Below are positions 179-19,689 of a stretch of DNA of 64,000 nucleotides, one piece after another. Both the position numbers and the translations under genes were made by a program. The notes beneath the pieces are model-generated. The model did no database searches and was not told the DNA's origin. It saw nothing but the letters and a program-made list of their open reading frames with translations. This DNA comes from Trichosphaerium sp. ATCC 40318 (lineage: Eukaryota > Protista > Tubulinea). The stretch is taken from contig JALMLS010000353.1 in the NCBI GenBank assembly GCA_038496445.1, forward strand, positions 186,001 through 250,000, read 5' to 3'. The first letter of the stretch is position 1; the number at the start of each line of letters is the position of its first letter.

Positions 179-1860
179 TTATTTTTTTTTAGTTGGCGCT
201 GCAGCTACAGGTTTCTTTCCTTTACGTCGTGATTTTGATTTTTCTCCATGAGTACTACAAGAATTAGGATGTTCTTGAGGATGTGTCATGTATTGTTTCA
301 TCATAATCGAGTTAAAGCTATTCTTCCCTTCGCATGCTATCCTTTTCTTAAGAGCTTTAACACCAATAGCTCTTGTGAACCTTCCTGCGTTTATTCGGAC
401 AGATGCTACAAATGCTTTATATAAAAGATCAGCTGAAACATCTGGTGTGATATCTTCTTCTTTTTCTACTTCTTGCCACCTGTTTACAAGCGTAGAAATT
501 TCATCTGTTCGGGCACTTGAGGTGAAGAGGGTCAATACTCAAAAACAAAGAAAAAGTGAGTGGTAAAAAAAAAATTGTTTTTCTCGATAATATAAACCGG
601 CATTCATGTCCACATAGCATACATCAACACCCATAGTAATACTGAATAATATGAAAGCAATTTTTTTTTGTAAAAAATCAACTCACAGGGCGAGGAGAAA
701 GGTTGAAAAAAAAGACAAAAAAAACAATGTGTTTGTAAAACTCGAGCTAACAAACACGTACTTGACCTTGCCGTATATGCTTAACAGCTCTATTCTTCTC
801 TTATCAGATTCTGCATTAGTTTCTTTACATATACCAGCGGTACAATTGCATTCATGCTTGAACCTTTCTTTGGCTTGCACAAGTCTTCCTGCACGTGGCT
901 TAAGTGGCATGAAATAAGCGATTGTAAGCTCTTCTCCTTCCTCAATTGGTCTAAGCGCACGAAGGAACATATGATTTTTTTTTCTATCCCAAGCTTGATA
1001 ACAATTTGGTACACAAGAGTGATTAATACGAGAAGCATCTAAACAATAATTAAACACGTGACAACCAAAAAAAAGGGAGTTAGCTAAAAATAATTTCAAA
1101 AAAAACTGTTCAAGTGACAGCGTCTACGCTGAACGTCTTTGTTAAAAATAGTATTTTTTTATGCGTACACAAGAAGAGGCCATTGGCCTTTGTATCCAAT
1201 GTTCTGACTGTAATCTGGTTCGACATAAATACACCTTGAATGGATTTTTTTCCCAGATCTTTTTCATGTACATCCATTAAATCCTTTGCTTGTTTACTAC
1301 CCGGCTTCCCTTTTAGATTCAGTCTAAACTCTTCTCTAATAATTTTCCCTAATTCTGCAGGTCTTGTTGATGCCATAGCAAGCATAATAGACTAGAAAAG
1401 AAGACCATCAGGATGATAAAAACAAAACCAAAAAAAATTTCAGGCTTTTTGCAAAATTACAAAAAATTGAGGTTTTAAACGTACAGGTGACTCTCTCATA
1501 ATAACATCGCTCTGTGAGATAGCTTCCTTTGCGAACATGCCAAGGCCGTGTATTTCAGACTTTTTAATCACCCAAGGCTTTAAAAGTTATTTAGACGCGT
1601 TTTTTATGCATAGACCGTTGTACGAGCGTATTGCAAGCTTAGGTACGTGATGAGCGTACCCCAAATTCTTGAGCAGTTGGGCTGGCTGTTATTTCAATTG
1701 GCTTTTCCTCTTTAACCTCAGCTACTTCCCCAGCCTTTTCACCGACTATTGCTGTTGGATCAGCCTCGTCAGTAACATTTTTTGCTGTATCTTGTTCTAC
1801 TACTACGTTATCTGCCTCGGTAGTTTCTTCCTTAGCTTCTGCGGCTTCTGTGGCTAAAAA
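179..1860 (-). CDS. SET-domain (SMYD-like) lysine methyltransferase, multi-exon, acidic N-terminus; start codon unresolved
   Basis: Spliced exons give SEIHGLGMFAKEAI (SET-N), ASRINHSCVPNC, ALRPIEEGEELTIAY and post-SET ECNCTAGIC; Lys-rich C-terminus in ORF 179..535. Confidence 0.85.
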
Positions 1861-2104
1861 TCTGCGATTTGAGAAAACTATAGCGTTTAATTAGCCTCCT
1901 GACTGCCGTGGTTGATTATTATGGCGTTTTGCTTATTAGTAAGGAAATATAACCAGAACGTGCCTGTTGTGCGCTTTGCGACCGGTATGCGCGATTTTTG
2001 GGTTAATGGAGCGCGTAAGCCGAGGCGTGATGAACGTAATACGAACATGGCGTTTATGACATTCTTTGACCTTTTTTTGATTTTAGCAACGACTGCAGCA
2101 TACA

Positions 2105-4458
2105 ATGAGCGCTGCAACTACTACCTTTCGTGTTGTGGGCAGCAGTTACACTTCACCGCAAAAACACGTACAATGCGATATAAACAAGCGAAGAGAGTTA
2201 CTGAAGCTTGTATGCGCTCTATTATATTATTTATAAAATATTGTCGTTAATACTAAGCGTAGACTGAGAAATCTCTTCGTATTCGCTCTCCAAAAGAATG
2301 GTATGGAGTCCGTTTCCAAGATTTAATAAATGTTGGAGCAAGCGTCATTCTAGAGTACATCTAACCTCATTTTTACCTTTGCTTACGCGTACAAAGTCAC
2401 TACGAATACTCTATTTGCGATTTTATGGAAGAAATGTATCCAAACGAGAACTGGCTTCCTTGGAAATTTGGTGCGTCTAAAATACCATTATTAGTTTATA
2501 TGCCAATTGGTAAACAACCCTAACAGGTCTTTCTGCCAGAAAGTCAAGAACCAGGCTTGTGGGAAAACCAAAAAGTAGTCCAAAAATTTCTACACTACGT
2601 ACGGCTTTGTCTCTGCAGTAGTGTCCCCATGTTGAGATAGTATTCTAGATGACTAGAAAGTACAATGTGAATGAGCCTGAAGATTGGTATACCATAAGTA
2701 GAAGCGAGTTTATGGAAGAAGGAGGTGAAGGACTATTAAGGCAAGTTCTTTATTTTAGAGCTCTGTTCTTTTCCCCTTTTGGTGTTGTCTAACTCTCATA
2801 GTTTCTACAATGGTTCGCTAAGTAAATTTCTAGAGGAGCAATATCCTAACGTAAATTGGGTCCCATACAGATTTGGTACGCGTTCCGTCTACTTTTCTAA
2901 CGAAAGAAGGCTCGTTTTTTTTATCACGTGACTACAAAGTTGTTTTTCAAGTGTCGGTATTCTCAAGTAATTACGTCGCTTATAATTGTATAGTAAAAGC
3001 ACCACAAAGTTACTGGCTGGAAGCAGACAACCATTTGGGGTACATACGCCTTGTACGTAAAACATAGCATTCCTATTTTATTCTTGTTTTTTTCTGATTA
3101 CTTTTAAATGTAGCTAGAAGAACGCTTAGGTATAAAAGAAGTAAACGACTGGTATAAAATAATAAACGAAGACGTCAGGAAGTACAATGGCAGTGGGTTC
3201 CTTGGGTACTATACCATTACAAGTGGTGTTGTTTTACACTATTACTTTTACTCCAAAAACCTTAACTTCACTTCGAAACATTATTAGATTGCTTTCTTTT
3301 CTTTTAACTTAAACTTCATATTCCTTCTTTAATTAGCATTACACTGCAGTTATAGTCTTGCAGATGTTTAAGTTGTTGTTCTTATTTATAATCCGTTAGT
3401 ATATTTGGAAACTCGGTGCAAAATATGTTGAAGGTATTCTACCCTGAAATAGAGTGGATGCCTGGAAACTTTGGTATTATAACTCAATTAAAGAAAACGC
3501 TTGAAGCTAAAGTATCTCTTAATGTAGCAAAAAGGGCACAGGGTTTTTGGGAAGACAAAGAAAATCAACTATCTATGCTACGTAAGGTACAAATGGTTTT
3601 TTGTTGTAGATGTAAGCATTTGCTTTTGTGGTATAGTCCCTACTTTGTTGGGTATATTTATCAGTATGTATGATTCTAATTAATGGCTTTAGATAGAAAA
3701 AAATAATTCTATAACAGATCCAAGACAGTGGGTGACAGTAACATACACTCAAGTTCGAGCAGCTGGTGGATCTGGGCTCATAAAGTATACTGAAAAATTG
3801 AAGTTTGTGTTTTATTAACAAAGCTGGTGTAGTAAACTTGGTGGTGTTAAAGAACTTGCAGAAACATTACACCCAGATATATCTTGGTCATATAAGGATT
3901 TTGGTATGTATTATTACTCCTTTTCTTTGTTTTTTAGTCACGACTGTTTGAAGCAAGCTATTTTTTTTTTGGCAATTTGTTTTGACTTAGTTTTGATGTT
4001 AACGTCTAATTTTGTATAGCTGGTGTAAGATCTAAGTATTGGAACGACGTAGAAAACCGCAAAAACTTTCTACGTAGTGTTGAAAAAGCGCTAAAAATTG
4101 AGACAACCTATGACTGGTTTCGTGTTTCAGGAAGACAACTTGGGCAATACTTTGGACCTGGGATATCTATGTATTGGCCAGGAATACTCATTAATACCTA
4201 CCCAGAAGAACAATGGATGAAAAAAGCTTTTCTAAGACAAAGCGCTAGATACAAGCGATCAGAACAGAGGTAAGATATCATCAGCAATATCTGTTGCTTG
4301 CATTACTGTTTTTTGTTCAATCAGTTTGAGAACATTTTTTTGTTTTTTCTGATAGTTTTTTTAGGGTACTGATTCACTTGCTCCTAAAACTGTTTGGGAC
4401 GAATTGTGTATTAGTTCCAGCATCACAAGATGTTCACTCTATAATTGGAGAGAAATAG
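2105..4458 (+). CDS. DWY-repeat protein 1 (about 5 x ~70-aa repeats), ends just inside the nuclease-like domain
   Basis: Exons encode KEWYGV, EDWYTI, NDWYKI, RQWVTV and YDWFRV, with YPxxxW(xPxxF) elements and (F/Y/L)W-x(3-4)-N linkers; last exon VLIHLLLKLFG...EK* ends at 4458. Confidence 0.75.
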
Positions 4459-4700
4459 AGCACATAATCAACAGGTGAATTGATACATAGACAAGAAACT
4501 CATTTATGGCCACCATGAGCTGAACTCAGTTGGTACAGGATGTGTCGTCATAGCTCCAGGATGGTGTACACTGCTTCTGCATTCGGGGCATAACAATAAG
4601 ACAATCTATTGCAGGGAACAACAGTAATGAGGTACAGTATAACAAAGAAACAGCAGAGTCAAGTAAGTAATAAAGAATTAACATAAAACAGAATTATGTT

Positions 4701-5425
4701 TTAATGGTACATTTCTCTGTAACTGACAGTCTTCCCTGTTTTCATTTCAATCTCGCCATTGTCATACACAAACGATGAAAGCTTTGCTTCATTGACTTTA
4801 ACATGTGTTTCATTATTGATAGAGTAAGCAGTCGTCGTAGTAACATAAGAAGATCCGCTATACTCTCCTTGGTTGGAAGCCTGAGAAATGCGTAAAACAG
4901 ACCTTCTCAAGACATCTCTGTTACCGTTCCAAGCCCATAGATCATAGGTATGTATAAGATCAACATATGTATGATTGTAGAATGAGTCCACAAGCCATGG
5001 ATTTCCTGTATGAAGCATTTTTTCAGTTTGGTTGATTGTTACTGTAAAGTTAGATATTTCTGTCTTGTATGGTGTACTAGAGCAGTTTACGCAGTGTTTA
5101 GGGAAAGCGAACATACACCGCTGATGTTTTGGACAATCGTTGTCTGTATCGCAGTGTTCTAAAGGGAGGATAGGGTCGCACTCGTAAAAAATTGATTTCA
5201 CGTTGTATAAGTCACAAGAGTTTTGTATGACGTAATTAACGTTTAAATCGCCACCATACCTTGTGTTTTGGTTAGTATAGGGTGTTACGGCTTTGTTTAA
5301 AGGCACCATTGATCATTTTCTTTAAAAGACATGTCAACACAGTCTTCTTCTCTAGAGGTTGTTTGCTCAGTACTAAAAACACATAAACCCAAAAGGAGCA
5401 GTATCCACGTGGATCGCATTGCCAT
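4701..5425 (-). CDS. Secreted Cys-containing protein with a 1-nt frameshift near 5300 (pseudogene or sequence error)
   Basis: Signal peptide MAMRSTWILLLLGLCVFS from 5425 runs to NDQWCL*; removing one base gives WCLNKAVTPY in frame with ORF 4701..5309 (CDTDNDCPKHQRC). Confidence 0.6.
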
Positions 5426-5555
5426 TTTTAATGTTTTTGTGTAAAAAAACAAGTACTGAAATATTTCGGACAAAACATCCAGTCAAGTCTCATTTATCCA
5501 CGATTTCCAACTCCATTCATCACACGTATAGATAATGGCAAAAAATTAAGCAAGT

Positions 5556-7978
5556 ATGAATAGTGCTGTTGGTATCAAACCACTACCTGGAGTTCACACA
5601 GGCTGAGTCTGGGCAAAACTTGCATAATAACGATTTGAATTGGAGAAGCAGTCCTCAGAATTTTCGAAGTGGCTTCATTAAAGGCGAAGCGTACAAGCGT
5701 CTAAGTATCTGCAATGTCAACGTAAGTATCGATCGCAGTAGTTTCCCTTTCAGAAAAGGAATAAAAACTCCGCTGAACCACAAACTCATTTTGATTTTCA
5801 TAGCAACAACACGTGATATTTTCAACCAAACAGTATGGGTACAGGGGCGTCAAAAGATTTAAAGAGATTGGTTCCTTACGCAAAGAACCAATATCCACAC
5901 CTAGAAAAGCTGAAAAATAGCATGCTAATAACAGGTACTGATTGGAAACCTTCTTTTAAGCCAAAATACCGCCAAACACCTCACAAATGTTTTAGATTAC
6001 ACAAAACCAGATAATCCTATTGTTTACGCAAATGGTACGCTTAATAGCGGCTTTTAGTTATGCCGAAAGGTTTGTTCGCTTTTATACAATCAATTTATGG
6101 TGACGTCGTAGATGACTTTGAGCGTCTTACTCTATACCCGAAGGAAGAGATTGTTGGAAAGAACTGTAGGTTTTTACAGGTGAGCTAACGGTTTTTTCTC
6201 TCTTTCGGAGCGTGTCTAAATACCACGAAAGGGACGTCACACAAGTAAAGATAGCGTAGAGTTAATCAGAGATGCCATAAAAAACGCAATAAGGAGAGAT
6301 ATTGTGCGATAAAAAAAAAACTTCTTCACTTGTTAAGAGTATTCTTATGTCGCTACTAGGTTCTTCTTAACTATCGTAAGGATGGAATGCCATTTTGGAA
6401 TAATTTTGGTATAATGCCTCTTCGCGCCGGTATGTTAAAGCTCCTGCTAAATTAGACGATATCACGTGATATCTATATTACGTTTTTCAGTTCGAAATTC
6501 GCGTAACCATATTTTTTATACTTCCAATTGGTTTCACTCCATTTAGACCCTACGGATGACTCTAAAGTAACGCACTTTATTGGTATACAACGTGATATAA
6601 CTCCTATAAAACAAGCAAATAGAGAGCTACATAAGTGGACCTCTGTTGAAGTAGCTCTTTGGGCAGGTAATTAACACTACAAACAAAATAATATCTTACT
6701 ATGAAATTAGAAACTCTAGATCTTTGGGAGTACGCTCTACTATTCATAGATCATAATGTGACCGGAAGGAAACTTATAACTATGAGTACGCAATAACCTC
6801 TAATTTTTCTACTAACTGGTAGCACGCTAGCCGTTGGCAACTTCAAATTTGATATTGGAATGCCACCTAAAGTTGCTCAGTCATTTCATAAGCATGTCGA
6901 GTCTGTACGTACTAATAAAACCTTTTGATCTTCTCTTACTGATTTTAAAATAGCTTGTAAAGAAAACCGAGCAAGGTACTGTGTTAAGTGTTAAAGGAAC
7001 TTCGATACTGATGTAATCTCAAAGGAAAGTCTATTGTATTTAAGACAAGAAAACAAGGTGCGTATATCTTATGTACTTGTTACTTTCTTATCTCGTTCTT
7101 TCCAATAGCTAGGTTTGTGGCTAAAGCATTCTATGAAGATCAACGACGTGTTTTTTTTGTGTTAGAACATGATACTCTAGCTGCGATTACTAAACGGTAA
7201 GTGTTCCCTTCATTTGAAATGCTGCCATTTTAACATTCTTCAAAAGGATACGCACAGTGTTCCCTGGTAAATTTATAACCCAGGAGGTGGTTTTATCATG
7301 GAATAATGGTAAAAAACAGGTTGTTCTAGAAGATGACAACGATGTTGCTAACGCAATGTGCGTAGAATGTTCTCAAAATGTTATATTTCAATTCTCAACT
7401 AAAACCCCATGTTGATATCACTAACGCTCACTTATTTATTTAGCCAAGCCACTAATAAATCCACTACAATGCACTTATTTGTTAGTAGACGAAAAGCTAA
7501 TATCTCTTTACCTGATCTTGAACTAAGTAAGCTATAAAACAAATCCGTTTTTAACATTATTAGTTGCAGATGTCGAAGTTGCTGTTTGTCTCATCAATGA
7601 AGATAATCGCATATTTTTTGTAAATCATAAACTATGTGCTTTAACAGGGTAATGATATCTCATTATCATTGCCTCAATAACTGATTTAATCCCTTAGATA
7701 CTCAAGGAAGGAATTGATGCAAAAAGATTTCTCAATAATATGCAAAAGAAAACTTGAAAAAACTCATGCTCCAGAAGGTAAATACAATGTCTTACAAGGC
7801 ATAAAGCTGTTAATTAACTTATAAATATTGTATAGAATACTATGAGAAGATAAAGGTTAAAGGCAGAAACGAAAAATTAAGGGTAATTTCAACGCATAAA
7901 CATTTAACAGACAAGAACATTTTTATATGGACTGCAATTCGTATCCCAAATCGTAACACAGATAACTATAGTTTATAA
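5556..7978 (+). CDS. LOV photoreceptor with LOV-SAM-PB1-PAS architecture; start approximate
   Basis: Spliced: ITDYTKPDNPIVYAN, EEIVGKNCRFLQG, LNYRKDGMPFWN, FIGIQRDIT (LOV); KWTSVEVALWA..LWEYALLFIDHNVTGRKL (SAM); KAFYEDQRR...VVLEDDNDV (PB1); AVCLINEDNRIFFVNHKLCALTGYSRKEL (PAS). Confidence 0.85.
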
Positions 7979-14058: not shown

Positions 14059-16494
14059 ATGTATCACAGGGACTGTTTTAGCGTTGTGTATTATTATTTT
14101 GCAGTACAGGTAGTACTCCTTATGTTAATAAATTGTACTAGCGGACAGGTAACATTAAAAAAACTGTTCACGTGGCGAAAATTAATACTAAATGTCTGTT
14201 TCAGTCCAGTCAGTTGTATCTGTATAAATGCGCTGCTGGAACGTTTAGAAGGGTACAGTTGATGAACCAACCAGAGTATTTAATTGATTATTCACGCATT
14301 GGCTCATCAAGGTTCGTATTCTTTGTACAAAACAACTTTTCTAACAATTACTTTTTGAAGGATAAACTTTGAACTTGAACTACAAGGCCAACAGTATAGG
14401 CCACCATATATTTTCACAATCGATGGAAAAGACCGACGGCAAGAAGAAGCGCCATACCGTATGTATGGCGACGACAATTGCGAGAATATACCCAGCGGTA
14501 CTTATTTCTTGAAGTTCTAAAAATAAGCAAAGCGTAGGTAATTATACTTTATCAGTAGTTGATATCAATAAAGATGTCACCACCTCTATCAAACTACACA
14601 TTCCACAATGCCCATCAGGTACTGTACTATCTTTTTGTTAATACTAACATAAGTAGACCACTTTCTTGAAGCCTTATGGAGTAATACGTTTGAAGTAAGT
14701 AATGGATTAAACAATCAAAGATAACACGATCCAGGATGATAAAAATGGAATATCGCTAATGCATGATGGCGATGTTTTCGCAGATTGGAAAGGGTTGCAC
14801 TTTCAGGTAATACATGGAATAGATTAAGTCTTACAATTAAGTAGGGTGGCTATGCATCTCTTTCTGCTAGTAACCCGCTCCGTGAAAGCCTTGGAGCTTT
14901 GACTATAATGATGTGGATTCATCCGGGTACCTAGTTTATTAAAAAGAAATACAAAAAGTCCTTACACAATGGAGAATCCCTTGAAGGCGACCAGTACATA
15001 TTTACGAACGGTGATCGTCATGACGACTACATATCTGTAATGCTAGGAGGTAAGTTTTTTTTGTATCGAACAATTTGTCTTACTGTTAACAAGATGGTCT
15101 CAAGTCTATCCACGTATCTGTTGCAAATTATAAAGGTGCATCTTCAGTAGATGTTCCAGTAGGTAAGAACAATAAAAACCAAGAGTCTTTTCAGGAAAGA
15201 TCATCATAGTTCTGATTCGCTTTTTACAAAAAGGTAAATGGACACATGTGGCGTTAGTTGTACACTCTATTTGGGACTATATTACAAACACCAATAATTT
15301 TTATTTGTACATAAATGGAGAATCTCGCTTGCTTACTAGACCAATCCCGAATGGGTACATTCAAACATCACCAAATGCTGAAATTACGTTGGGCGCTGAC
15401 AGTAATGGCGATTCAAGTTTTAAAGGTAACTTGATTAATTGCTATTGTTTCCCTGGCTCATGGTATTCCAGGTTGGATGACTGATGTTCGTATATTCTCG
15501 TGTAGCTTATCTAGAGAATCTATACATAACTTTAGTAACGAGAGTATGATTACAAGGTCTTTTACACTATTTTTTTCTTATTTTTTTCTCGAAAGTTCCT
15601 TCGTTTGTACCTTCGCCAACACCATACCCGTGTGCGGAGGGAATATGCATAGATCAAGATTTATTGGTTATCAATGATACTGTTCTCACAAATACCATAT
15701 TCATACAAGGTGAGACATTTATTTTAGTTGTTTTATTTATAAACGTGTAGGTGATCTTATTGTACAAAATGGTTCAATATTGCGTTTGAGTGATGCAATG
15801 ATACGTGTCACAGGATGTGTTAATATTATCGGAGGTTTAGAAATAGATCAAGTAGATGAAACAACTGAAGTGCTCCACTGGGATGGTACAGAAATCGAAC
15901 ATGTCAAAAGAAATGGAACTAACTTTTGCTGTTTATTTTAGGCAAAAACTGCACTCTCAATTTCGAGCCAGAACAAGCACCATGTGGTATTACTCAACAA
16001 ACGTATAGAGTTTCTGGTACCCAGGATTTTTTACTTTTAAAACAAGAAACAGGACGACAATTACATATTATTGTCCTATTTTTTACAAAATGTTCTGCTT
16101 ATGCTTCTTGAAGAAACAGGATTGACTGCTGTTATCGGGTTATCAACAAGTTGCAGTTCAGATAACATTTGGATGCCAATAGTGCGTATCTCGCAAGCGT
16201 TAAAACAATTCCTTATCTACATCAACACTTTTGCAATTTTGTCTTGAGCGTTCGTTTGTGCCCAAAGACATTACTGCATTTTTACAGTACTTTTTGTGCA
16301 AGCATTAATTGTTTTAGGTAAGCGCTATCAGTGTTGGAGTTGTACTTATTATTCTTGTCACGATTGTAATCGTTTTCTTTTATTCTCGTGATACTAGAGA
16401 GCGTTTTCTACCTTTTAGGCGTTCTGTAAGATTACATCGGTCAACCAGTATTGCTATTGGTGCTACAAGGATTAATAAAAAACCCGAGATATAA
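14059..16494 (+). CDS. Secreted type-I membrane protein with LamG/ConA-like jellyroll, tandem copy 2
   Basis: Paralogous to 11087-13438 (MYHR start, LTIMMWIHP, WTHVA, LYING, ITLGA, identical YSRDTRERFLPFRRSVRLHRS tail) with shared intron positions. Confidence 0.75.
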
Positions 16495-16890
16495 CTTACA
16501 AAGCAGCTTTACATTATTCTTTATTACTTCACATCAACTTTCAACTTACACGTTGCTAAATCGCTATAGAACTCGAGCTCAGTCCCTTAGGGACTACCAA
16601 GATATTACTTGAATGTTGTACATTTGTGTACTTTGTAGAAAAAAAAGGCTTCAAAATAGAAAGCCTCAAAAACTTATTCAAGTACTTGTGAATAAAAAAG
16701 TCTAGCATATTGTTTCCTACAATGCCAATAATAGGAACAATCCCTCGCAATATTTAGCTTGTAGCATAAAACTAACTGATCATCAAGCAAACAAAATAAT
16801 TTCCTGAATGGGATTGGATGTACATGGATCCTAAATATGTGCTACCAGGTACGCACTTTACCCAGGATTTATGGTAAAACGCTTATTCTC

Positions 16891-16899
16891 AAAAAAAAA
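16891..16899 (-). terminator. Putative Pol III oligo-T terminator of the candidate ncRNA
   Basis: T9 on the minus strand, 2 nt after the 3' strand of the closing stem. Confidence 0.5.
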
Positions 16900-17210
16900 G
16901 AGAAGGAGAGTGTCGAGATTATGGTGGAGGTTGTTTTAGATGATGACGCATTTGCGTCTTAAGTCAGCATCGCTTGAACATTCCTCCCAAAGGAAGGAAC
17001 ACTCGCAGTGTAATCGTTAAATCTTCTCTAAGGCTGGACTTCTGCCCACACCTTATGGCCAGATCAGCCAGGGTCATAGTGTTGGTCTATTCCCAACAGC
17101 CACTTAGTCTTTCCCAAGTGTCAACCAGTCTTTCCTGGCCGTCCCTCTGTCTTTCCAGAGCGTCATCCTGTCTTTCCAAGCTGTCATTTACCACCAAGTG
17201 GCTCTCCTTC
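16891..17210 (-). ncRNA. Candidate ~310-nt structured ncRNA (Pol III-like) with five tandem GAAAGA-type loop hairpins; family unassigned
   Basis: GC-richer island; 5' GAAGGAGAG pairs with 3' CUCUCCUUC, followed by a U9 tract; covarying hairpin stems with a conserved loop; G-U pairs favour the minus strand. Confidence 0.7.
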
Positions 17211-17976
17211 AGTATAAAATGCTTCAAAAACGGTTTTAATGATAGTCAAAAACTCGGAAGAAAAAACTATGGTTCAAAAAGGATGCAATTTTCTGGCATT
17301 CGGAATAAAAATGAGAATATATTAATGACGCACCAGCAAACCTAAACCAACTCTTTGTTTTTTACACAGCTTTACATTAAGTGAATGCCACGTTGGCATT
17401 TCTTTTTTTAGTTTCTATTAAATGTACGCATTCTACACATGCTTATAGGTTATACCATGCCGTTAAATGGAAATGTAGAGCGTGAAAGCACATATAAACT
17501 CGTTCCTTTAAATAAGCGCCTTGAGCGCTGGTTCATGATGCCTCGGTCTCGCCAAACGTACATCAAGCTCCCTTTAGGTGGCAACAGAAGTTATATACGT
17601 TGGACAGTAGTTATTGGCTGAAAGTGGATTGCGCTCTTAAATCAAGCACCAATACTCTAGTTGCCGTTATATACGCGCTAACATTCTTCTTGTTACAGCT
17701 ATTCGCTGTTTGGACCGCTTTCAGAGCAAAAACGTGCAACCAAAATGCATCACGCACACATGTGTAAGGATATCCATAGTGATACCTTCCAGTTCGATAA
17801 CAACTTGTAGCCAGCTATTGTTTAACATAACATTGTGGTTAAAAAACGCAAGGAAAAGATTGGCGGAACCATAAGGCAAGAAAGGTATTTAAATAAAATA
17901 AGCCAATTTATTGCTAAGACATGAATTGCAACGTTTTATTGTGTTTCTATTGATATAGAAACTACTAAACGTCATG

Positions 17977-19253
17977 CTAAAGGAGTACACAAGTTTGATT
18001 CTGATGCTCAGCCAAGTAAAAGTTCCCTGCAACTGGCAGCTGGTACTTATACGTGTGAAGGAAAGAGCGAAGTTTCCAACGTAACCTACCAACATGACTA
18101 GAACTTTGAGTCCTTTCAAGTTCATCTGATATACTATCTGGTTGCTCAAAAAGCAAAAAAACATATCTATGTGGACCTGATAATATAAAAAAAGTGAGAA
18201 AACAAAGAACTTGTGTCAAAAAAAAAATCATGTGGCAATAAAAATAAACAATCTCAATGGACTTTACCTGTTCCAGAAGGAGGTGAGTCTTCCAGATAAG
18301 GTGCGATATGTTTTCCTTTAGTCACATCGCCACCAGGGATATCAATAACAAGCCAGTGCTTTCTAAAAAAAAAGATTAAAACTTATTTTTTTCCAACGCC
18401 TTGAAAATACTGTTCTAAGCGAAACAAACGTAAAGGTCTTTAATGTGGGGAAAAAAACACAGTCATATCTGAATGAATAGAGACTGTACAACCTTCCTGA
18501 TAAAACAACTTTAGTCAATCTTATGCACGTACACTGGACCCAAGAAACCGTTGCGTGTTGGAGCGTCAGGATCAATTTTCATCAAAGTATACGTTTTATC
18601 AGCAACCGCTCCAGAAAAGCTAACAGAAGGCTGCTGAGTAGTTTGATCTACAGTTAATTTCACCCCTGGAGTAACAGAAACATCTCCAAAAGTAACCTTA
18701 CAGAAAACGTTACGTTTTCTGAACACGTGCGAGTAAACAAAAACGTACTTCAAGCTGGTTTAGCGGTACACTGGGAATTAAATCCTTTACGATGCCGTGG
18801 CGTACCTTACATCACTTTTAGACAAATAAACCGACTTTTCCAAATAATAAAAGCGCTTACAAAAGTATCCATCATCACTGCTGGTGCTCTTTGTTCTCCT
18901 TCTTCTTTTTCCGCTTGAATTTCGTTCAGCTCAATTTTTTCACTTTGTACTTCTTCAGTTTCATCTTCACGCGCCGTATTTGTTACAGCAAGGCTTGTAG
19001 GAGACTCATTGTCATCATTTTCGTTGTCTGCTTCTTTTTCAACGTCTTCTTTATCCTCAGTCTCTGATATCGCTGTTTTTGGCTCTATTGGTGCTTCTGT
19101 TGGCTCTTCGGCCTCTTGTGTAACAGGTTCATCTTCTTTATCTTCGACAGGATCCTTTTGCTCTTGCTCTACTTCTTCATCTTTAACTTCTTCTGTATCT
19201 ACATCATCTGGTGCTTTTGTATCTTCAACAGATACGTTGTCAGGGTCGTCCAT
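17977..19253 (-). CDS. PEBP/RKIP-family protein with acidic N-terminal extension and C-terminal CaaX (CVLL)
   Basis: YTLMKIDPDAP, KHWLVIDIPG, PPSGTG|PHRYVFLLFEQ, PVAGNFY; terminal TCVLL*. Confidence 0.9.
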
Positions 19254-19689
19254 GATTAGCAATTGGATACTTATCCAAATACACAAGCTTTAAGCGAGCT
19301 GGGCTTATTTATTGTACATTTCGTGATTATTCTAGTTTGGTACCAGTGTTATGTTCCAACATATGCACTAAAGCACTTTGCCCTTGTATTAAGCTCGCTG
19401 AAATCATTGCATAGTACTGGACTGGCGCCATTGCCATTAAGCATTTCTTAGGTTTGGTACAAGGCTTCTTTGTTTGCAGAGCTTCAACCTTTAGTAGGTT
19501 TTTGTGATTCTTTGGTACTAATTTGCAGCTACTGACTAAGGCAACGTCTCCATGACTAATCTGAAAACCTATGTTATTTTAACTTGGTAGCGTTTGTTTA
19601 CGGACATACTTCGTCTAAGCGTTGTACGGTTTTTCACCTTATGTCGTATTTTCATGCGCGTGTGTTGAATGGTTGCTACAGCACATGTT

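Follow-up and report, generated by a model that had tools for sequence, protein, structure and literature searches.

An abundant structured amoeba RNA carries a tandem GAAAGA-loop hairpin module that recurs in bacterial tmRNAs, phages, RNA viruses and retrotransposons

In the MAT2A 3'UTR hairpins recognized by METTL16 and in lambda boxB bound by the N peptide, a protein reads a purine-rich loop that is carried on short hairpins of free stem sequence and present in several copies. Neither system is known to span more than one domain of life. RNA elements common to bacteria and eukaryotes are very rare; they comprise the TPP riboswitch, small self-cleaving ribozymes and, in experiments, the IGR IRES. 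Nor do we know of any described IRES class that consists of tandem hairpins with identical loops. In bacteria, to which CsrA is confined, the CsrB/RsmZ sponges present a loop with the sequence A(N)GGA. Here we describe an RNA encoded in the window (the whole 64-kb stretch of amoeba DNA that was analysed), which may be likened to these sponges by analogy: both could be described as abundant non-coding RNAs in which many short hairpins with varied stems offer one loop motif for multivalent binding.

This resemblance is functional only. The amoeba loop is GAAAGA, with its first G paired and a G-C closure; unlike CsrB/RsmZ, the amoeba array has a fixed UG-A-C junction, a 21-nt register and a eukaryotic host, and its hairpin recurs inside tmRNA, mRNA and viral leaders. 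Membership among CsrB/RsmZ-type sponges was rejected, given that the loop is not A(N)GGA and that CsrA is not eukaryotic. The loops of MAT2A (UACAGAGAA) and boxB (GAAAA or GAAGA) likewise differ from that of the amoeba module, whose single-nucleotide junction is absent from both systems. The identical hairpin unit is found in Acidimicrobiia tmRNA (RF00023), in three copies with 19-20 nt spacing and UGAC junctions. The module is the only thing that tmRNA and the window RNA have in common; identity as a tmRNA was rejected, since RF00023 has no match in the window and the RNA has neither a tRNA-like domain nor a tag reading frame.

The minus strand of the locus encodes a discrete, abundant, structured RNA about 290 nt long, with the following features:

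16911 to 17200, minus strand: mature abundant RNA, 5' end at about 17200 and 3' end at 16911 or 16912 (RNA contigs and fold).
17191 to 17196, minus strand: 5' strand of terminal helix P1, UGGUGG, predicted in the MFE and centroid folds.
17080 to 17183, minus strand: five-hairpin array, with hairpins at 17183-17164, 17162-17143, 17141-17122, 17120-17101 and 17099-17080.
16945 to 17070, minus strand: 3' domain, with hairpins predicted in the MFE fold at 17070-17056, 17055-17029, 17004-16976 and 16958-16945.
16922 to 16927, minus strand: 3' strand of terminal helix P1, CCACCA, predicted in the MFE and centroid folds.

In the RNA runs, high-depth contigs from this locus are confined to 16911-17200. 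The contig of run X7 spans exactly these positions at a depth of 127, with Illumina adapters flush on either side; that of run X11 meets an adapter at 16911 and reaches a depth of 2457, and that of run X9 covers 16924-17154. The bins flanking the RNA are 0 in all three runs. The adapters abutting the contigs at 16911 and 17200, together with the high depth, indicate a discrete RNA of about 290 nt that is abundant in terms of contig depth rather than molecule count, contigs from which cap status and polymerase are not readable. The original prediction, made from the sequence before these RNA runs were consulted, had called for a discrete minus-strand transcript of ~310 nt. Such a transcript is present, with adapters at both ends, but it is about 290 nt long and lacks the outer stem and U9 that the larger size had included.

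The minus strand of the locus folds at -107.4 kcal/mol (z -3.2), compared with -89 kcal/mol (z -1.9) for the plus strand, and the 290-mer folds at -94.9 kcal/mol (z -3.4), a value equalled by 0 of 200 shuffles. The minus strand, favoured earlier on account of its G-U pairs, is thus also the better folded one, and in all contexts outside the amoeba RNA, GGAAAGAC is the loop sequence on the strand that is sense for the tmRNA, tRNA or ORF. The proposed long-range pairing of UGGUGG (17196-17191) with CCACCA (16927-16922) is recovered in both the MFE and the centroid fold. A second proposed pairing, GAUGACGC/GCGUCAUC, appears in neither, its strands being used by the array or by local hairpins, while the additional hairpins suggested for the 3' half are predicted at four sites in 16945-17070 of the MFE fold. 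A BLAST comparison of the whole amoeba RNA with 120 fetched loci gave similarity in the array only, and the 3' half had no homologue. Since no orthologue of the whole RNA was found, the 3' domain and the terminal helix are predictions only.

Rfam searches of the whole window at gathering score, and of the locus (16500-17600) at E<=10, returned two chance-level matches, both outside the RNA, in agreement with the earlier view that it could not be assigned to a known family. RNase P or MRP RNA in a highly derived form had been offered as one identity, and the amoeba RNA does share with these a similar size and helix-closed ends, as well as two short strands, GAAGUCC and GACUUAAG, which by eye look like the P4 strands CR-I and CR-V. 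We nevertheless regard this identity as extremely improbable. RNaseP_nuc, RNase_MRP and their relatives gave no match even at E<=10, and five hairpins stand in place of the single P3, with no P3-like helix-loop-helix. The P4-like helix that had been suggested, AAGUC(C)AGC/GCUGACUU, is absent from the MFE and centroid folds; in both, the candidate P4 strands are mutually unpaired and fold locally, the first of them in a clean 11-bp hairpin. The strand GAAGUCCAGC lies in a local 11-bp hairpin and is unpaired with the other P4 candidate in folds from a tool that cannot predict pseudoknots. Telomerase RNA was rejected as there is no template-like run, box C/D and H/ACA RNAs as the boxes are not in the right places, and 7SK, U3 and Y RNA on their known signatures; none of these had an Rfam match.

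The most regular part of the RNA is its array. Five tandem hairpins with GAAAGA-type loops had been noted here at a period of ~20 nt, and they are indeed present, though longer and more regular than described. Each is 20 nt long, with a 6-7 bp stem, a G-C closure and a GAAAGA loop (GAAUAGA in the fifth), and the single-nucleotide linkers at 17163, 17142, 17121 and 17100 (A, A, A and G, respectively) give an exact 21-nt period. The accompanying observation that the stems vary yet still pair, while the loop is kept, extends well beyond this locus, as the hairpin unit with compensating stems recurs in many unrelated RNAs. We define the GGAAAGAC module as at least three tandem hairpins with a G-C-closed GAAAGA loop and free 5-7 bp stems, joined through a conserved UG-A-C junction that results in a spacing of 19-22 nt. 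By this definition the amoeba array, with five units at 21-nt spacing, is a member. It is also the sole match in the 64-kb window (17169-17099, 63.5 bits, E 1.7e-13) of covariance model R1, which was built from 41 arrays of other origin with the window left out.

Among 283 fetched loci, 88 hairpin-type arrays were found. Two loci retrieved by the pattern scan, L040, from a human-gut metagenome, and L011, entered the pooled repeat screen and BLAST databases only. Pairing at stem positions 1-3 is seen in 89-95% of 212 distinct units, compared with 38-53% after shuffling, and all six pair types occur. Double compensatory changes are seen at 8 of 11 predicted pairs, and the UGAC junction is at least 90% conserved in alignment A1 although it was absent from the search pattern. 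The constancy of the loop is in part a product of the searches, which used exact GGAAAGAC as the pattern; independent evidence comes only from the stems, the junction and the controls. As controls, three permuted loops, GAGAAGAC, GGAAGAAC and GAAAGGAC, were sought in viral contigs and yielded nothing but exact tandem repeats of a single stem sequence, whereas GGAAAGAC in viral contigs is accompanied by three or four different stem sequences at 9 of 43 loci. The module is therefore specific and goes beyond general A/G-rich tandem repetition.

The array is a modular RNA element without an Rfam family and was previously uncatalogued. In 20 array-bearing loci, Rfam detected only tRNA and tmRNA at gathering score, and no family covered the arrays; in four further array loci searched at E<=1, the matches besides tRNA and tmRNA were two sub-threshold ones, located away from the arrays. 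A blastn search of a cultured-phage collection with two array leaders gave no match. In the literature, including the 2025 tmRNA database paper, we found no description of the module, and the sole lead was an identity with 23S rRNA.

This lead concerns positions 2056-2063 (E. coli numbering), which are identical to GGAAAGAC and contain the A2058 macrolide/Erm site. The loop might accordingly mimic rRNA and be read by a methyltransferase of the KsgA/Erm/Dim1 type or by a similar enzyme or factor, and the KsgA/Dim1 family is universal. The 8-mer is contained in the 23S 2054-2068 sequence as quoted in the literature (PMC12887398), and small hairpin-like RNAs carrying the 23S 2058 segment are Erm substrates (PMC7449152). 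However, a given 8-mer is expected in 16S plus 23S rRNA by chance at ~7%, the 23S segment is no hairpin loop within the ribosome, and no linkage of the arrays to a methyltransferase was seen. Eukaryotic cytoplasmic rRNA, moreover, has G at position 2058. Such mimicry appears highly improbable.

The module occurs in bacterial and phage sequences as well as in eukaryote-type RNA viruses and retrotransposons, nearly always within or next to translation RNAs or just before start codons. Nearly all of the 46 arrays within ARAGORN-called tmRNA genes are from Acidimicrobiia, and they occupy the PK3 position. In phage-like contigs, arrays precede tRNA genes by 20-120 nt; others are found directly upstream of phage scaffold-like and major-head genes, in the 5'UTRs, and one rRNA operon leader has an array ~400 nt upstream of the 16S gene. 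In a picorna-like virus, an 880-nt 5'UTR has the array at its end, with 17 nt between the array and the polyprotein AUG, while a tombus-like virus has one array in its 5'UTR, with the AUG immediately after the last hairpin. Elements of the RVT_1/zf-RVT type, 45% identical to one another, carry arrays 15-23 nt before the AUG. An ORF of at least 80 aa starts no more than 120 nt downstream of 11 of the 38 non-tmRNA arrays, versus 1 of 38 on the antisense side. The arrays of loci L282 and L257 and of the RVT_1 elements, at the 3' end of the 5'UTR and 0-23 nt before the AUG, stand where initiation elements of viral IRES/5'UTR type are placed.

Arrays just 5' of start codons, including that of the tombus-like virus, where the AUG also directly follows the last hairpin, bring to mind a small mRNA, in which the amoeba array would be an IRES-like leader and the AUG at 17077 would start a 37-residue peptide:

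16964 to 17077, minus strand: 37-codon ORF, AUG 2 nt after hairpin 5; probably a chance frame.

The frame is open from 17077 to 16964, but 37 open codons after a given AUG are expected by chance at ~17%, and this AUG falls within AUGAC, a motif that recurs at the junctions. In the predicted fold, the 'coding' part lies tightly folded inside the terminal helix, and the sole variant seen, at 17071, would change Leu to Met. We consider the small mRNA improbable and the window RNA most likely non-coding, in which it differs from the viral leaders, whose array activity is itself putative.

The 5'UTRs of the RVT_1/zf-RVT family carry 4-10 hairpins of the module, and at least one family member is located on a longer AT-rich scaffold of eukaryotic appearance, as judged by eye. 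The amoeba array could thus have been copied from such a 5'UTR and be one of many dispersed copies of a retrotransposon-derived or SINE-like repeat. This origin is very unlikely: the similarity to RVT_1 elements is confined to the array, the amoeba RNA has its own discrete ends and a very high level, and the 64-kb window contains a single copy and no RT element or homologue. The repeat in the flanks of the RNA locus is inverted rather than direct.

The array might also act as an autonomous structural module, a robust, locally folding, purine-looped spacer that has no specific partner and serves either to stabilise RNAs or to block nucleases, helicases or misfolding; the amoeba RNA would then build a stable 5' body from five units. 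In tmRNA a pseudoknot gives way to the array at the PK3 position, which is known to tolerate substitution, and many arrays are near transcript 5' ends. All-purine loops, in addition, would be unable to mispair with most sequences. A spacer would not, however, need a loop and junction kept across domains, and permuted loops do not form such arrays. In the picorna-like virus, ~800 nt separate the array from the 5' end and 17 nt separate it from the AUG, a layout that speaks against protection of the 5' end. We think the spacer unlikely, if conceivable.

The occurrence of the module beside translation RNAs and start codons led us to read the amoeba RNA as a module-bearing multivalent display platform (a scaffold, sponge or decoy), probably linked to translation, a reading to which we give about even confidence. 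The display of one loop in several copies, already conjectured in the original prediction, fits the conserved loop and the covarying stems. The 5' domain is a five-unit copy of the GAAAGA-loop module, and in the proposed model its five loops, held out from the folded body, would bind several copies of one loop-reading partner. From the sharing of the module across contexts we infer a common partner, possibly the ribosome; most likely it would be either the small ribosomal subunit or some translation-linked factor, which viral and retrotransposon leaders would recruit as well. A single ribosome-recruiting function explains the contexts incompletely, because tRNA and rRNA leaders and the tmRNA-internal site are not initiation sites, and a partner common to bacteria and eukaryotes is not obvious. 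The short 16S stretch of locus L197 contains no 7- or 8-mer antisense to the loop, and we found no protein family that accompanies the arrays.

As a separate observation, an RNA-binding protein (phrog_850/DUF7788) adjoins the L047 array; it was found neither in the other fetched loci nor in the window.

More ambitiously than the display platform, and only tentatively, the array could be a universal element for docking ribosomes or translation factors in both domains, a doubtful proposal at present. It would give phages, picorna-like and tombus-like viruses and retrotransposons a minimal, modular entry site that is independent of both cap and Shine-Dalgarno sequence, it would let Acidimicrobiia tmRNA hold on to the ribosome, and the amoeba RNA would be a decoy that competes with invaders for the site, or a regulator of the amoeba's own ribosomes. 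If the module proves to be what it appears, it is an RNA element both short and portable, constant in loop and junction, which cellular stable RNAs, phages, a large retrotransposon family and two unrelated lineages of eukaryote-type RNA viruses have each taken up independently. The arrays 15-23 nt before viral and retroelement start codons, in uncapped RNAs, would then yield a directly testable hypothesis on initiation without a cap. The amoeba itself gains a new small RNA of high abundance, and in annotation a covariance model of the array could be used to flag the leaders of uncultured viruses as well as a tmRNA variant that current models align poorly.

Sequences around the mature RNA bear on its biogenesis:

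17234 to 17274, minus strand: upstream region with a TATA-like ATTAAAA (17240-17234) and AACCATAG (17274-17267), both picked out by eye from the sequence.
17202 to 17210, minus strand: 5' arm of a 9-bp stem that flanks the mature RNA and lies outside it (I13, an inverted repeat with 100% complementarity).
16902 to 16910, minus strand: 3' arm of the same stem (inverted repeat I13), outside the mature RNA.
16891 to 16899, minus strand: T9 run, 12 nt past the mature 3' end and crossed by the X1 contig 16519-17215.
16519 to 17215, minus strand: longer transcript, precursor or read-through (run X1, 701-nt contig, depth 13.6).

The closing stem 17210-17202/16910-16902 and the U9 that follows it are located exactly where they had been predicted, though both fall outside the expressed RNA. 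The ends of the mature-RNA contigs, 17200 and 16911, coincide with the inner foot of the stem, which is probably a precursor or processing stem; in the proposed pathway, the ~290-nt RNA would be excised at this foot from a longer transcript. The 701-nt contig of run X1 is taken to be RNA because the other contig of that run is spliced. An AATAAA at 16525-16520 adjoins its end, which suggests a longer polyadenylated precursor. The T9 at 16899-16891 is a possible Pol III terminator, as judged from its sequence. The Pol III-type origin suggested for the RNA keeps this T9 in its favour but is made doubtful by the mature 3' end at 16911 and by the longer transcript, which reads through T9 toward the AATAAA. 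Upstream, AACCATAG is a possible DUSE-type snRNA promoter element, its match to the motif consensus being judged by eye. It lies ~55-60 nt upstream of 17215, and the DUSE is positioned ~60 nt upstream of the start site (PMC7919456).

The five tandem hairpins put forward in the original prediction are present on the minus strand and are more regular than described there. Each unit is 20 nt long, with a 6–7 bp stem, a G-C closing pair and a GAAAGA loop (GAAUAGA in the fifth). Because one-nucleotide linkers (A, A, A and G) part the 20-nt hairpins, GGAAAGAC recurs with a period of exactly 21 nt. The proposed outer stem was located as a perfect 9-bp inverted repeat (17210-17202 / 16910-16902, minus strand); it encloses UGGUGG (17196-17191) and CCACCA (16927-16922), which can pair with each other. 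The hairpins and the T run listed below were read from the sequence, and the two upstream elements were picked out by eye.

17274-17267, minus strand: AACCATAG, ~60 nt upstream of 17215
17240-17234, minus strand: TATA-like ATTAAAA, upstream of the small RNA
17183-17164, minus strand: hairpin 1
17162-17143, minus strand: hairpin 2
17141-17122, minus strand: hairpin 3
17120-17101, minus strand: hairpin 4
17099-17080, minus strand: hairpin 5
16899-16891, minus strand: T9 run, 3' of the outer stem

The position of AACCATAG matches that of the DUSE element, which sits ~60 nt upstream in dictyostelid small-RNA genes (PMC7919456).

The stretch is present, in whole or in part, in twenty public sequencing runs from eight studies; eight of the runs are recorded as RNA, and four were compared over positions 15400-18700. 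Three of these four lack spliced neighbours, and in them the contigs were confined to the small RNA, with all flanking bins at zero: X7 (16911-17200, depth 127), X9 (16924-17154, depth 79) and X11 (16911-17139, depth 2457). Illumina adapter sequence abuts the X7 contig at both ends and the X11 contig at 16911; since many fragments stop exactly at these junctions, 16911 and 17200 are natural molecule ends to within one base. Both lie at the inner foot of the outer stem. The mature RNA is ~290 nt long, without the 9-bp stem and the T run, so that the discreteness of the predicted ~310-nt RNA was confirmed while its length was not. Across the RNA, the four runs depart from the window at one base only: at 17071, X7, a metagenome RNA run, has G>T in plus-strand terms (C>A in the transcript).

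The fourth run, X1, is RNA, because contigs of the neighbouring PEBP-like gene are correctly spliced there. In X1 a 701-nt contig, 16519-17215, extends through the stem and T9 and stops beside AATAAA (16525-16520). The most economical interpretation is that the 290-mer is cut from a longer transcript, primary or read-through and probably polyadenylated. This weakens the earlier Pol III-type label, as far as contigs, which carry no readout of cap, polymerase or stoichiometry, can speak to it.

Folding gave -107.4 kcal/mol (z -3.2) for the minus strand, compared with -89 kcal/mol (z -1.9) for the plus strand. The mature 290-mer alone reached -94.9 kcal/mol (z -3.4), equalled by none of 200 shuffles. 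Two proposed elements, the long-range pairing GAUGACGC/GCGUCAUC and a 'P4-like' helix, are absent from the MFE and centroid folds, where the array or local hairpins take up their strands; the fold of the 3' domain is a prediction from this one sequence. Rfam 15, run over the whole window at gathering score, assigned no family, and no match covered the small RNA even at E<=10, leaving the suggested kinship with RNase P/MRP unsupported. No tRNA-like domain, correctly placed C/D or H/ACA boxes or telomere-template run is visible in it. The amoeba RNA exists as an abundant molecule with defined ends, whose five hairpins keep their loop and junction while their stems drift, and the case for its expression and structure is strong.

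The hairpin array was then treated as a module and sought elsewhere as three GGAAAGAC motifs, 9-17 nt apart in metagenome contigs and 9-14 nt apart in the genome and viral scans. At least 120 metagenome loci, at least 120 prokaryotic genome loci and 43 viral loci were recovered, many of them plain tandem repeats. At least 88 were hairpin-type arrays, in which half or more of the loops are flanked by at least three complementary bases and the stem usually differs from unit to unit. Among the 212 distinct units, pairing at stem positions 1-3 runs at 89-95% against 38-53% with shuffled partners, and all six pair types occur at each position; as the set was chosen for pairing, these figures are descriptive and do not amount to proof. 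The UGAC junction gives independent support: it was absent from the search pattern and is at least 90% conserved in A1, which aligns 41 non-redundant three-hairpin arrays of other origin. Here U and G end one stem, A is the sole unpaired linker and C opens the next stem. Of the 11 pairs that RNAalifold predicts for A1, 8 show double compensatory changes, and a covariance model built from A1, with the window left out, returned a single match in the window (17169-17099, 63.5 bits, E 1.7e-13).

The junction also bears on the possibility that the amoeba RNA is a small mRNA, its AUG at 17077, two nucleotides past hairpin 5, opening a 37-codon frame. That frame belongs to a recurrent AUGAC junction, sits in tightly folded RNA and is no longer than expected by chance, making a coding role possible but very unlikely.

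Permuted-loop controls (GAGAAGAC, GGAAGAAC and GAAAGGAC) gave 'hairpin-type' arrays only as exact tandem repeats of a single stem sequence, unlike GGAAAGAC, for which nine viral loci combine three or four distinct stems. Three copies of GGAAGAAC were unexpectedly common in viral contigs (L312-L431; at least 120 loci), often spanning 47-50 nt in total, with flanks that are not hairpin-like. Variant loops within arrays (GGAGAGAC, GGAUAGAC, GGAAGAGAC and GGAAUAGAC) suggest a loop core of GGA...AGAC; loop invariance is partly a product of the exact search pattern. The segment identical to the loop is 23S rRNA 2056-2063, containing the A2058 Erm/macrolide site (PMC12887398), and small hairpin-like RNAs carrying it are Erm substrates (PMC7449152). 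Matches of eight bases to rRNA are not uncommon, however, and we give rRNA mimicry very little weight.

Among the matches listed, where proportions of contexts in the metagenome and genome scans are not frequencies, 46 arrays fall within genes that ARAGORN calls as tmRNA, with tags such as ANKQFALAA; five of these genes were checked against Rfam RF00023. Their record titles are almost all of class Acidimicrobiia. The array in these genes always has three hairpins and replaces the segment between PK2 and PK4, so taking over the PK3 position. Against the Rfam tmRNA model this stretch is aligned only by way of a local gap, at a posterior probability of about 0.3. In a second context, on AT-rich phage-like contigs, the array lies 20-120 nt upstream, on the same strand, of a tRNA gene opening or within a cluster.

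L003 1820-1866; also L001, L013, L103, L107 and 40 further loci: tmRNA genes, three GGAAAGAC hairpins for PK3
L047, L079, L067, L100, L236, L245 (IMG/VR contig): arrays at tRNA clusters

Phage-type genes occur on L047 and L100. Beside the array and tRNA cluster, L047 also encodes a 680-aa protein (4251-6293) with matches to phrog_850 'RNA-binding protein' and to Pfam DUF7788; none of the other fetched loci was found to carry it.

Leaders of rRNA operons in Pseudophaeobacter sp. EL27 carry 5-6 hairpins (L197 7167-7262; L127 147-263), with the 16S 27F site ~400 nt further downstream in L197 and both copies lying at contig ends. The IMG/VR phage contigs L261 and L241 have the array immediately ahead of the genes for phrog_13908 (scaffold-like) and the major head protein phrog_1357; array and spacing of L261 recur in L270 and L272. 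In a Chloroflexota MAG the array is followed by AGGAGG and ATG. Another IMG/VR contig, L264, has six hairpins (170-339) followed at ~345-560 by a stretch that, by eye, resembles a tRNA-like acceptor/T-arm minihelix (GGGGAGU ... GGUUCGAAUCC ... ACUCCCC), called by neither ARAGORN nor Rfam.

Arrays also precede the reading frames of RNA viruses. L282, a 9.5-kb picorna-like contig with RNA helicase, 3C protease and RdRP_1, carries four hairpins (794-863) at the 3' end of its 880-nt 5'UTR, ending 17 nt before the polyprotein AUG (ORF 881-6466); a 6-codon upstream ORF overlaps the gap between array and AUG. In L257 (= L112), a 4.4-kb tombus-like virus (RdRP_3 E 2e-73), the array is in the 5'UTR and the AUG immediately follows the last hairpin.

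Another group comprises ~4.3-kb retrotransposon-like elements encoding a ~1200-aa protein with RVT_1 and zf-RVT, of which >240 relatives were found; Pfam detected no AP-endonuclease domain in these proteins. Among the loci read, L049, L084, L074, L052, L070, L118 and L454 carry 2-10 hairpins. Where measured (L049, L052, L074 and L084), 15-23 nt separate the last loop from the ATG, even though L049 and L084 are only 45% identical. The array is absent from the more distant members L455 and L456. Nearly all family members (P0001-P0120 among them) come from contigs just 3-5 kb long, L074 and L118 contain head-to-tail copies, and one member is in NCBI assembly GCA_024449935.1. Gene content points to a eukaryotic host for the viral and retroelement contigs. 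That the amoeba RNA is itself a retroelement-derived repeat is possible but very unlikely; the 64-kb window holds one array copy and no RT. Among the matches listed, an ORF of at least 80 aa starts within 120 nt downstream of 11 of 38 non-tmRNA arrays, compared with 1 of 38 antisense.

The module is common to unrelated RNAs of bacteria, phages, eukaryote-type RNA viruses and retroelements, which, with the five hairpins, bears out the earlier claim that the loop is kept while stems differ. No Rfam family and no published description of it were found, most subscription-journal papers lying outside the search, so that an earlier description is possible. A kept loop on a free stem, in 3-10 copies, would be the hallmark of a site read by something, and the one-nucleotide linkers and UG-A-C junction suggest that neighbouring hairpins are held in a fixed geometry, as in cooperative binding or a compact side-by-side fold. 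A structural or stabilising module with no partner would suit the tmRNA context. This is at odds with the conserved loop and junction and with the internal, AUG-proximal array of L282, and we consider it unlikely.

The contexts appear to share the translation apparatus: tmRNA, tRNA and rRNA precursors, the phage genes with the heaviest translation, and the final 15-25 nt ahead of the AUG in RNAs unable to depend on a cap. A stack of 4-10 stable hairpins would obstruct scanning by the 40S subunit, and the viral and retroelement leaders therefore point to internal ribosome entry just 3' of the array. From these shared contexts and AUG-proximal arrays we therefore favour, with low confidence as to the partner, a docking element for the small subunit or a translation factor; no loop-reading partner was found for the array, and the tRNA and rRNA leaders do not fit neatly. 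The amoeba RNA would then be a five-valent platform (scaffold, sponge or decoy) for the same partner as the viral and retroelement arrays.

The PEBP-like gene (17893-18753, minus strand; DPDAPTR motif in ORF 18511-18753) has GT..AG introns at 18175-18265 and 18363-18532, confirmed by the X1 spliced contig; the small RNA gene follows in the same orientation, ~680 nt beyond the end of the PEBP-like transcript. Directly upstream of the PEBP-like gene is a 159-aa ORF (18807-19286, minus strand) of acidic, Asp/Glu-rich, low-complexity sequence.
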